Assembly: GCF_964204645.1 (NCBI RefSeq) | Contig: NW_027437462.1 | Location: 27,001 to 91,000, forward strand | Direction of reading: 5' to 3' | Origin: Tubulanus polymorphus | Lineage: Eukaryota > Animalia > Nemertea | Length of the DNA stretch: 64,000 nt | Shown: in pieces, positions 23,667-27,551 of the stretch | Position numbering within the stretch: position 1 is the first letter of the stretch | How the letters are laid out: each line of letters starts with the position of its first letter | The notes under the pieces: generated by a model | What the model was told of the DNA's origin: nothing | Databases searched by the model: none | What the model saw: the letters and a program-made list of their open reading frames with translations, nothing else | Position numbers and translations under genes: made by a program

Positions 23667-26600
23667 ATGGGCACCAAAGACGACGAATATGATTATTTAT
23701 TTAAAGGTAAAATGTTTAAAATCACTTTAAATCATGTTTCAAATTGTATATTTTGTGTGGGTTTATTTTCGTACTGATCAGTGATGAGTAATAGATTGTG
23801 AAGGACCCACCCACCTCGAATCGAACCCTCCTCCTCCGTCGTTGCTACGACGTACAAACTACTCGTCGTTGTTGCTACTGGCCTAAACTATTTACGAATT
23901 TAATTCGCCTCTGAGAATTAATAATGAGTGATTTCGATCAGTTATTTATTCGCAGCACCTCGTTCACTTATCTGACAAACAATGGTTAAAATTTCTATCG
24001 GCTTTGATAGTTATAATCAGCTCACAAGTTTATTTCTAATCCTCTCATTGATAGGTCCCGCCCGCCCCAGAAAGCCCCGTTCATGGCATCCCTCTGATTA
24101 AATTCACATCAGTTTTAATCTGTTAGTAACACATGTTTAACCCCGGTGTAGTAAGAGATAGGTCGTTATACACGCAGGTTTATTTTACTCCTTCCGCTAA
24201 AATTTCAACTCTCAACATTTTGGTAGGTATTAATTTACCCCTGGGGTTAGGGGTGGGAGTTCAGACGTCTAGGTTTGTATGGTTCTGAATTTACTAAAGG
24301 TTTGATTTTAAATTGTATTAATTCCAAATTAAGAATTATTGAATGAATCATTGACTTGTTGACTGTTTGTGTGCTTACTGCGGAACATACGTGGACCGTG
24401 ACCAGGATAAAGTATGTGTAATGTTAATTAGGATCTCTGCGGACCGTGACTAGGACAGTTAGACCTATGTCTAGTGGAGTCACTATACTGAAGTATGTCG
24501 TAGTCATGTAGTAGAAATATTCACTTATAAAAATGTCTGATGTTGAAAATGTAGAAGTTACTGTTTACAGTCAAAACATTGAAGATCAATTCAGTGATTT
24601 TAGTGAAACAAGCGTCGACAATATTGAGCAAACTACTAGTGTTGAGGATCTCGAAACTATTGATGATTTTAGCGAGGAGGATCTAGAAACTGCTAGTGAG
24701 GATTACGATTGTGATAGTCTTAGTTTAAGCTTTTACAACGAACAACCTCGAGTTAACACTAAACCTTGGACAGATATTCCACGGGATATCACAAAAAAAC
24801 GTAGCGTCAGTGATGAGACATGTTTTGATTATTTTGATTTTATTTATAAAGGTTAGTCGTGTCTATAAGGGGGGGGGGGGAGAGGGTGCAGCAGGGTAAA
24901 CTGTATTGTATCAATTGAACACAGATGTTCAATTGATCTGTGTTAAAAAAGCAATTATTTCCGAGTATTTTTAATTTCCGCTTGGTGTCAAGGGAATTTA
25001 TTGTTAATGGGTTTGAGAGTTATTAGGGTTACGCAGTAAACCGTGTGTATAACGCCATCTATTGATAGAATATAACAATGTTTGTATCGTCTCCGCGTAA
25101 CTATGGTGATGATGATTATGATATGATATGGAAAGGTATTGTTGCGAGTAGCGGAGTGACGGAGCGAGTGTTGATTGTAGTTGAATATTTACCCCGTTTG
25201 TTTGTTTATTTATATAGTTGTGTTAATTGGAGATTCTGGAGTCGGTAAAAGTAATTTACTCAGTCGATTCACGAGAAATGAATTTAATCTAGAAAGTAAA
25301 AGTACGATAGGTGTGGAATTCGCTACCAGGTAAAGTACACACGACCCCTGTCTGTCTATCTGTGCCCGCCACCTATTGGTTTGAATACTAACTATATATT
25401 GTATGTATTATAGGAGTATACAAGTTGATGGTAAAACGATTAAAGCACAGATTTGGGACACTGCTGGTCAGGAACGATATCGAGCTATTACTAGCGCGTA
25501 AGTATCATCATCTTCATCACAGCCCTCTATATTCTATCGTCGGCCGGTATCGCCACCTATTGTTTATATTTACAGGTATTATCGAGGGGCTGTCGGTGCT
25601 TTATTAGTTTACGATATCGCGAAACATTTGACGTATGAAAACGTGGAACGTTGGTTAAAGGAATTGAGGGACCACGCTGATAATAATATAGTTATTATGT
25701 TAGTTGGTAATAAATGTGATTTACGTCATTTGAGAGCGGTGCCGACTGAAGAGGCAAAAGCATTCGCAGGTTCGTTACTACGGCAACTTCTGCTGACACC
25801 TACTGGCAACGACGATAACTAATCCACAATGTTTTGTTTTTCAGAAAAGAACAATCTTTCGTTTATAGAAACTTCAGCTTTAGATTCGACGAATGTTGAA
25901 ACTGCTTTTCAAAATATTCTAACAGGTAAGACGAAGTTTAACGCCATCTATTAGCAACTCGTGGAAGCACGGTTTACCCAGAATGCTTCGCCTGCTTCCC
26001 CTACCATTTTCGCATGGTCTAAATTAGCACGTAAAATTTAAATACTATTTATTAAGAATCGATTAAAAAGGTACCACTGTATCGATACTAAACGCTGACA
26101 ATAGGGGTCGTTACTAACAAACATGGTCGTTCTGTCCGCAGAAATCTACCGTATCGTTTCACAAAAACAAATCCAGGAGGCGCCACATGAAGATGAGATA
26201 GCGGGACACAATGTTCAATCGATACGTGTTGAACCAACTGAAAATATCGACCGTAAAAATACGTGCTGTTCTGTATAGATTAAACACCTATAGGTGGCGC
26301 CGCCAGTTCCGGTTCGTAAATTGTATAAAAATACTTCATGAATCACTCAATAGATGGAGTTACAATCACGTGTAGTTGTTAGTTGTATCGTGTAAATGTA
26401 GATGGCGTTAGTTATCAGAGTTTGCACTTTTAGTGGTACCTTTTTACACCGACTTTTCCTCCCTCTATCAATAAATATAAATAGCATGTTTTATTATTTT
26501 CTATTCCTACCTGTTTTCTGTTGCTATGGTGTTTGTCGTGTGTTCGCTCGTCGCTCACCGGTTGCTATGTGGCTCACTAGTTGCTATGGTTATATCGTTA

Positions 26601-27551
26601 TTCTGTTACAGAGATCTATCGTATCGTATCTCAGAAGCCGTTGCCGTCAGCAGACGATGAGAACATCAGTTCAAACGTACAAACAATTCGCGTCGAACCG
26701 ACTGAAAATATGAACGAACGTAAAAAAATATTCTGTTGTAATATGTAACCAATGACGACGACGGCGACAACAATTTGGATTCTTTCACCGTGGCAACAAT
26801 GATGACAACTGATGATAAAACGTGTGCATGAACTATAACAATACGTGGAAGCGGTTTGTTGTTGTTGCTATGGTTACGGCGGACTGTACAGTAGTGTTTC
26901 TGTACTTAAAATACATATCAAACATTGACGTTTAGCGCGGCGTGGCTGATTAGGGGTTAACGTCCGGGGTCGACTGACTTGTATTTTACAGGAGAATGTG
27001 ACATTCCAATTACACACCCCTCTCTCAACTGATATAGTGTCGTCATCTGTAGTTTTCATTTATTGACATAAAGATGGCGCCACGTGTAACTGGCGCACCG
27101 TGTTATCTTTAAAATAAATATAAATTATATGAAAATTGATTATTATTATTAATTATAGAGAAGAATTGTAAGATATAAAACACTAAAAAAACATTCATTC
27201 ATTTTTTGCTTCTGTCAATAAAAATATTGTAAATTTATTACCAAATATTTCGACTTTCATCCAGTATATATCGGTTCTTATTGTTGCTGCAAGATGGCAG
27301 CACTATCTACTATCGGGTTATTTCTGCAACGAATGAATACACTACTAGCTCCATCTTGTGGTAACGTTTATAATTAGATATTGGAAGAGTTATTGTTGTA
27401 TTTTTGTTTCGTTGCAGAAATTTACCGTATTGTAAGTCAGAAACAAATCCGGGATAGTTCGGATAACGAATCTCCTAGTTCGAACAGTCAACCCGTAATA
27501 CCGCTCACAGATGGCGCCGGTGATCGCAAAAAACAATGCTGTTCTACCTGA
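23667..27551 (+). CDS. RAB11: Ras-related protein Rab-11. Shared exons 25218-25329, 25414-25497, 25576-25769, 25845-25925; canonical exon 1 23667-23706; alternative last exons 26142-26278, 26612-26748, 27418-27551
   Basis: [13 protein letters not shown]|[38 protein letters not shown]|[28 protein letters not shown]|[35 protein letters not shown]...[21 protein letters not shown]|[27 protein letters not shown]|EIYRIVSQK, the diagnostic Rab11 sequence. Confidence 0.97.
24533..24851 (+). CDS. RAB11: Rab11 alternative first coding exon 1b (106-aa acidic N-terminal extension)
   Basis: ATG in an AAAATG context; open frame ending DYFDFIYK G|GTTAG, with the same phase-1 donor and a similar terminal motif as canonical exon 1 (DYLFK G|GTAAA). 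Confidence 0.8.
25078..25135 (+). CDS. RAB11: Rab11 alternative first coding exon 1c ([19 protein letters not shown])
   Basis: ACAATG start, 19 codons + G then GTATT donor (phase 1). DDDYDMIWK aligns with DDEYDYLFK. An 82-nt intron to exon 2 is a typical size here. Confidence 0.75.
26612..26748 (+). CDS. RAB11: Rab11 alternative last exon B ([45 protein letters not shown])
   Basis: Own acceptor TTACAG, in frame, ends in a CCxx prenylation motif. Confidence 0.9.
27418..27551 (+). CDS. RAB11: Rab11 alternative last exon C ([44 protein letters not shown])
   Basis: Own acceptor TTGCAG, in frame, ends in a CCxx prenylation motif. Confidence 0.9.

Follow-up and report, generated by a model that had tools for sequence, protein, structure and literature searches.

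How many forms of one small GTPase can a single gene supply when its G domain is encoded once and its two ends are encoded several times? The question is raised by a locus of the palaeonemertean ribbon worm Tubulanus polymorphus, in a window of 64,000 nucleotides of contig NW_027437462.1 (coordinates below are those of this whole stretch), where a Rab11 gene comprises three exons beginning with ATG, four core exons and three homologous last exons. Recycling endosomes have Rab11 as their master switch, and few Rabs are as well conserved; to learn how one G domain is targeted to various membranes and partners, researchers usually turn to the vertebrate paralogues. An earlier note on this DNA had claimed that the animal may build up to nine Rab11 variants from this locus, by choice of first and last exon instead of by gene duplication. 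Our analysis indicates that the locus is probably one canonical Rab11 gene with a single set of G-domain exons, whose alternative terminal exons arose by old tandem exon duplication.

One G domain with several ends

We read positions 23400-27900, translated each proposed exon and checked the coordinates at the level of single bases. The exon coordinates, phase-1 donors, acceptors, EIYRIVSQK starts and CCxx ends previously noted were all exact on this re-reading and translation. The exons are as follows.

23428-23706, plus strand: first exon 1a (coding sequence 23667-23706), 13 codons plus 1 base, phase 1, donor GTAAAA; 5' untranslated region (UTR) from 23428 or earlier
24533-24851, plus strand: candidate first exon 1b, ATG, 106 codons plus 1 base, phase 1, ends DYFDFIYK, donor GTTAGT
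25078-25135, plus strand: candidate first exon 1c, ATG, 19 codons plus 1 base, phase 1, ends DDDYDMIWK, donor GTATTG
25218-25329, plus strand: core exon 2 (P-loop GDSGVGKS and switch I), Pfam Ras E 7e-11; RNA joints 23706>25218 and 25329>25414
25414-25497, plus strand: core exon 3 (WDTAGQE, switch II), Pfam Ras E 7e-9; joints in RNA
25576-25769, plus strand: core exon 4 (NKCD guanine-specificity motif), Pfam Ras E 7e-21
25845-25925, plus strand: core exon 5 (ETSAL ... QNILT), with one donor for the alternative last exons; RNA joints 25925>26612 and 25925>27418
26142-26278, plus strand: last exon La, ends CCSV and stop; AATAAA at 26470
26612-27116, plus strand: last exon Lb (coding sequence 26612-26748), ends CCNM and stop; 3'UTR to about 27116; AATAAA at 27113 and 27217
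27418-28153, plus strand: last exon Lc (coding sequence 27418-27551), ends CCST and stop; 3'UTR to about 28138-28153

The core exons translate without interruption as a Rab11 G domain and are separated by introns of 75-84 nucleotides, every one of which is of the GT..AG type. Exons 2, 3 and 4 each exceed the cut-off of the Pfam family PF00071, and the 26-residue exon 5 falls just below it (E 4e-4). Against solved structures, exon 4 matches Rab11A and Rab11B best (E 3e-36), followed by Rab25 (7e-25) and Rab2 (1e-17). The core is also identical at 144-155 of 157 positions to the Rab11 open reading frames of metagenome loci resembling complementary DNA (cDNA), as compared with a local script. Judged by sequence (G1-G5 motifs, Rab11 as the nearest match and CC ends), the locus is a member of the Rab11 subfamily of the Ras superfamily.

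We searched the six frames of the 64-kb window for first exons with a loose motif ([DEN][YFWLIM][LIVMF][FYW]K, then xGT), which matched 1a, 1b and 1c alone; a loose tail motif, searched in the same way, matched La, Lb and Lc alone. Both motifs are confined to the proposed exons, and chance is therefore excluded as their source.

Three old and conserved last exons

La, Lb and Lc are each preceded by a pyrimidine tract and CAG, and each opens with the same nine residues, EIYRIVSQK. They are homologous exons, each of which encodes a hypervariable tail, a lipidation motif and a stop; the double-cysteine prenylation motif that closes all three tails was read from the sequence. The membrane targeting of a Rab is decided in part by its hypervariable domain and prenylation motif.

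The tails are under purifying selection. In pairwise comparison their synonymous sites are saturated (proportion of differing synonymous sites, pS, 0.78-0.96), with a non-synonymous proportion (pN) of 0.23-0.37. Across the first nine codons La and Lb differ by six synonymous changes and no non-synonymous one, and the nine residues are the same in all three tails; comparisons with Lc contain in addition a TCN/AGT swap of serine codons, which keeps the residue although the counting method registers it as non-synonymous. In the tail alignment, private residue changes number about the same in La and Lb, with no excess in La. By this sequence comparison La, Lb and Lc are old duplicates, all kept by selection at the level of the protein, since synonymous sites are saturated, the protein is conserved and La is no more diverged than Lb.

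We then compared the locus with RNA, in the form of assembled contigs from two runs of separate studies, X5 (2014) and X2 (2024), whose tissues are not stated. The contigs of both runs are spliced, and both are therefore RNA. Each run contains the joint from 1a to exon 2 (23706>25218; X5 contig 16, which includes it, begins at 23428), every core intron, and the joints from exon 5 to Lb (25925>26612) and to Lc (25925>27418). The depths of the contigs that carry the last-exon joints, which are rough values, are 19 (X5) and 950 (X2) for Lb and 14 (X5) and 515 (X2) for Lc, and Lb and Lc are on this basis both substantial forms. The 3' end of Lb is marked by X5 contig 17, which ends at 27116, next to the AATAAA at 27113. 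Contigs 15, 18 and 19 span the Lc 3'UTR, where the RNA ends at about 28138-28153; the Lc 3' region contains neither a canonical AATAAA nor an ATTAAA. A further run carrying the same species label (X6) gave a 32-nucleotide Rab-like match only.

The RNA evidence for La takes a different form. X2 contig 13 has a depth of 43 and starts at 26139, at a CAG found both in the La acceptor and at the close of exon 5, with one unmatched letter before it, and the intron directly upstream of La has an X2 depth of about 3, giving a step of roughly 15-fold at the La acceptor. Such a step is the expectation for low-level splicing, and assembled contigs drop rare joints; we therefore consider La to be probably used, at a few percent, as a minor form. 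Of the three alternative last exons proposed previously, Lb and Lc are thus joined to the core in RNA of two studies, and La is likely.

Candidate first exons within intron 1

The beta1-entry segment encoded by exon 1a is DDEYDYLFK. The segment entering beta1, which the alternative heads would alter, is the RabSF1 region, a name that reportedly belongs to the scheme of Pereira-Leal and Seabra.

Exons 1b and 1c resemble coding exons. A codon-usage model trained on the exons of the window versus the introns of the Rab11 gene gave 1b a score per codon of +0.24 in its proposed frame (-0.19 and -0.84 in the other frames), a value attained by none of 273 intron windows; 1c scored +0.17 in its proposed frame, and -0.41 and -1.06 in the others. 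The guanine plus cytosine content of 1b by codon position (0.48/0.31/0.24) is like that of the Rab11 exons, and the intron between 1c and exon 2, at 82 nucleotides, is of the same size class as the other introns of the gene.

The peptide encoded by 1b is acidic and rich in serine and threonine, and the exon is single copy in the genome. It matched no Pfam family and no family in a protein atlas. A single-sequence fold prediction gave a mean predicted local distance difference test (pLDDT) score of 46.7, which fits disorder and is weak evidence for it. Exon 1b has the look of an acidic, disordered extension specific to its lineage; no part of the locus is less certain.

Rab11 copies in the Tubulanus genome

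The 268-Mb genome contains this Rab11 gene and one diverged Rab11-like gene (L002) on another contig.

G000:C7, about 20538400-20540100, minus strand: diverged Rab11-like paralogue, with 64% identity in exon 4, intron positions that match in the exons compared, and a single last exon ending CSC

The canonical first-exon motif was not found within about 9 kb upstream of this paralogue. The idea that variants are made here instead of by gene duplication therefore needs to be narrowed: there is one canonical Rab11 gene, but a diverged Rab11-like paralogue is also present in the genome.

Comparable Rab11 genes in other animals

A homologue search, with the full-length cDNA frame of metagenome contig L028 as the query, identified three NCBI proteins labelled ‘isoform X1’ (P0145, P0147 and P0148, from Haliotis rubra, H. 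rufescens and Mytilus galloprovincialis) and two transcript-derived proteins (P0140 and P0176). All five have a variant N-terminus (..DDDVDFILK, ..DDEFDYITK, ..ADEYAYIMK or ..DDYSYLLK), followed by a normal core. In the DNA of H. rubra and M. galloprovincialis intron 1 contains the alternative first exon, and the called gene includes both first exons. The Rab11 genes of Haliotis and Mytilus are like that of Tubulanus in having a second first exon with an ATG, in intron 1 and in phase 1, that encodes a variant beta1-entry motif. They differ in that the mollusc DNA read has two first exons and one last exon, versus three and three, and no exon like the 106-residue acidic 1b was seen in it. Counted back from the final lysine, exon 1c and the mollusc-type alternative exons share an aromatic residue at 10 positions and an isoleucine at 2, and their sequences suggest that 1c and the mollusc exon may be of common origin.

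For the tails, a pattern made from the three aligned Tubulanus sequences was searched against metagenome contigs and recovered 40 Rab11 last exons. La by itself, as the query of a word-index homologue search, gave no candidates of the permitted length; queries of exon size therefore do not retrieve full-length Rab11 proteins. Two tandem tails each are present in contigs L012 and L028, which are cDNA-like and have the second tail in the 3'UTR behind an AG acceptor, and in contigs L029 and L039, which are genomic. Two marine metatranscriptome contigs, L027 and L030, belong to a single organism (their flanks are 98-99.9% identical) and carry two tails on one core: L030 corresponds to L027 plus a tail exon of about 180 nucleotides, with its own stop, before the final tail exon, and the usual tail thereby becomes 3'UTR, as in the design of KRAS4A.

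In the tunicate Styela clava (P0199, L052) a single first exon is combined with two last exons in tandem, and the called gene ends at the second stop; a tunicate-like transcript protein (P0205) has the second type of tail. In Styela and in the six metagenome contigs named above, as in Tubulanus, the tails are homologous, and each starts with EIYRIVSQK and ends with CC. Styela differs from Tubulanus in having two tails rather than three, and an alternative first exon was not found in it. Among insects, the 288-residue gene model P0128 of Timema tahoe strings two alternative Rab11 tails into one wrong protein. The second of these tails is also found in termite-gut metagenome contigs (the L013-L022 group, probably host DNA), and the first in Coptotermes (P0168). 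These sequences hint at alternative Rab11 last exons in polyneopteran insects. In Daphnia carinata and Holothuria leucospilota, Rab11 has a single first exon and a single last exon.

Among the loci compared, the three-plus-three arrangement of Tubulanus is the richest of its kind, and the layout itself is not unique. The Rab11 genes of the molluscs and of Styela are its closest actual relatives; they were annotated automatically, and we did not find them discussed in print. The earlier note knew of no description of such an arrangement for Rab11. We likewise found no paper describing alternative Rab11 terminal exons in the literature searched, of which coverage was partial, but comparable exons already lie inside the called genes of Haliotis, Mytilus and Styela.

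How much of the array is used?

The most serious competing explanation is that the array is only partly live: the gene would make two proteins (1a with Lb or Lc), and 1b, 1c and perhaps La would be leftovers of duplication or fortuitous frames. Several observations favor it and weigh against our own reading. In the assembled contigs of X2 and X5 no joint from 1b or 1c to exon 2 (24851>25218 and 25135>25218) was seen, and the joint from exon 5 to La (25925>26142) is not listed; of the junctions put forward for checking, those of 1a, Lb and Lc were found. RNA depth in both runs is zero at 1c and intron-like at 1b (5-12, versus 800-1400 on exons). Exon 1b, which is without a Pfam family or a confident fold, matched nothing in a search of 1.84 billion representative proteins, a null result that suggests that no annotated protein containing 1b is present in the public collection. 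The proposed orthology of 1c with the mollusc exon rests on a motif too short for proof, and the comparison animals include no nemertean relative. Finally, assembled contigs lose rare forms, just two RNA runs were compared, and free combination of the two ends is hypothetical.

Against a partly live array, the tails are saturated at synonymous sites, yet La retains its frame, its acceptor, the nine shared residues and its CC end; it diverges no faster than Lb, and RNA depth rises about 15-fold at its acceptor. Exons 1b and 1c retain an ATG, phase, donor and coding-type codon usage, and transcripts of other spiralians contain comparable second first exons. We consider this explanation unlikely, although it retains a real share of the probability. 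As for the claims that it bears on, the alternative first exons are intact and coding-like, with counterparts in molluscs, but 1a alone was seen joined to exon 2 in the two RNA runs. Correspondingly, of the up to nine variants, the combinations of one first exon with two last exons are proven by RNA and those with three are probable; the full nine are unproven.

A second explanation is that La and Lb are internal cassette exons before Lc, in the style of KRAS exon 4A, each with its own stop and with Lc serving as 3'UTR. This design exists in another animal, as the comparison of L030 with L027 illustrates, and X2 RNA does continue beyond La into Lb and beyond Lb into Lc (contigs 13 and 14). That run-on RNA is colinear with the genome and thus unspliced, and no joint is listed from beyond La or Lb to a later acceptor. 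The end of X5 contig 17 by the Lb AATAAA, and the AATAAA at 26470 that accompanies La, are further points against such cassettes, which we regard as quite improbable.

It is extremely improbable that the extra exons are an artefact of assembly, such as collapsed or mis-joined Rab11 copies: nothing was found in favor of this. DNA run X1 (possibly from the same sample as the assembly) forms a single colinear contig across 23000-28582 at an even depth of 37.8, so that a local assembly error does not account for the order of the exons. Apart from this Rab11, the genome has a single, clearly different paralogue, and the Lb and Lc joints in RNA both leave from the exon 5 donor.

Proposed mechanism

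We believe that the best account of these data is the one given at the outset, in which old tandem duplication has furnished a single canonical Rab11 gene with alternative ends. The exon 5 donor at 25925 would be spliced to one of the three last exons, each with its own acceptor, stop and 3'UTR, and each tail would restart helix alpha5 with the same nine residues before continuing into its own hypervariable tail and CCSV, CCNM or CCST end. The choice of tail would probably be made by cleavage and polyadenylation at an upstream exon in competition with splicing to a downstream one, with Lb and Lc as the main forms and La as a minor form. At the other end, 1a would be the default start, and 1b and 1c, inside intron 1, would most likely be transcribed from internal promoters in restricted tissues or stages. 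Their use would swap the beta1-entry segment DDEYDYLFK for DYFDFIYK (1b) or DDDYDMIWK (1c), and 1b would add about 90 acidic, probably disordered residues. We infer that La, 1b and 1c are used, that promoter choice selects among the first exons, that the two ends may combine freely, and that the resulting proteins may differ in membrane or effector targeting.

A broader proposal is that alternative first and last exons are an old, conserved and as yet undescribed feature of bilaterian Rab11, with the fullest set in Tubulanus. A nemertean, molluscs and a tunicate have such exons, and sequences hint at them in polyneopteran insects. In this proposal 1c would be orthologous to the mollusc exon and would yield a functionally distinct Rab11, changed at its N-terminal, beta1-entry (RabSF1) surface, and the tails would route the protein to different membranes. 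We offer it tentatively, as a possibility with the odds against it.

Relation to described GTPase genes

Duplicated exons diversify at least one other Rab gene: Rab6A and Rab6A' are made from one gene by mutually exclusive duplicated exons. The exon that is swapped there is an internal one of the G domain, altering three residues; unlike in Tubulanus Rab11, the N- and C-terminal ends are unchanged. CDC42, one of the two closest described parallels, uses alternative last exons, homologous copies that each supply a hypervariable region, a lipidation motif and a stop. In vertebrates, RAB11A, RAB11B and RAB25 resemble the Tubulanus tails in that they vary mainly after EIYRIVSQK, and elements of vertebrate tails (compared with P0200 and P0184) are recognizable in Tubulanus, with an ‘ESP’ element in Lc and an ‘I.V.PT.EN’ element in La and Lb. 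The vertebrate variants are separate genes, whereas Tubulanus has one canonical gene and one diverged gene with a CSC end.

The other of these closest parallels is that of KRAS4A and KRAS4B, which use alternative homologous fourth exons derived by exon duplication (PMC9882654). The two systems share a single G domain followed by duplicated exons that encode a hypervariable region, lipidation motif and stop codon. The Tubulanus gene differs in encoding a Rab, with CCxx ends for geranylgeranylation rather than a CaaX box, in having three copies of the tail rather than two, and in having candidate alternative first coding exons as well. Each of its tails also seems to be a genuine terminal exon with a 3' end of its own, and not an included cassette.

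Surroundings of the gene

Interstitial telomere-like runs (TTAGGG/CCCTAA) are found at 22420-22470 and 23300-23400, in intergenic DNA directly upstream of Rab11. The first coding exon of a gene rich in glutamine and histidine lies at 22480-22850 on the minus strand, divergent to Rab11, and an upstream region of about 600 bp is common to the two genes. Downstream, the short repeat at 28582-28696 reaches a DNA depth of about 186,000, versus 37.8 in its flanks (about 5,000 copies), has many junction variants and is abundant in RNA; it is probably an element resembling a short interspersed element (SINE) or a miniature inverted-repeat transposable element (MITE). A variant-free stretch of the X1 contig, at 24329-25536, was considered as a sign of constraint and rejected, since plain intron and 3' regions have long ones too.

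Elsewhere in the window, long minisatellite-type tandem repeats that are open in several frames occupy 3584-4240, 12493-14344, 17759-18292, 46520-47466, 50795-51311 and 51917-53183; in one example a 10-residue unit is present in about 50 copies. SBDS lies at 34245-34880, nearly all of it in one exon. A scan of the 64-kb window against Rfam gave no match.

Implications

Around an otherwise constant Rab11, this gene exchanges the tail alone, and possibly the entry to beta1 alone; it is a natural experiment that isolates the contribution of each segment. The finding is also of use for annotation, as in the fused Timema model P0128, which is exposed as two alternative tails. With isoforms in molluscs, in tunicates and probably in insects, the isoform biology of invertebrate Rab11 may be under-appreciated.

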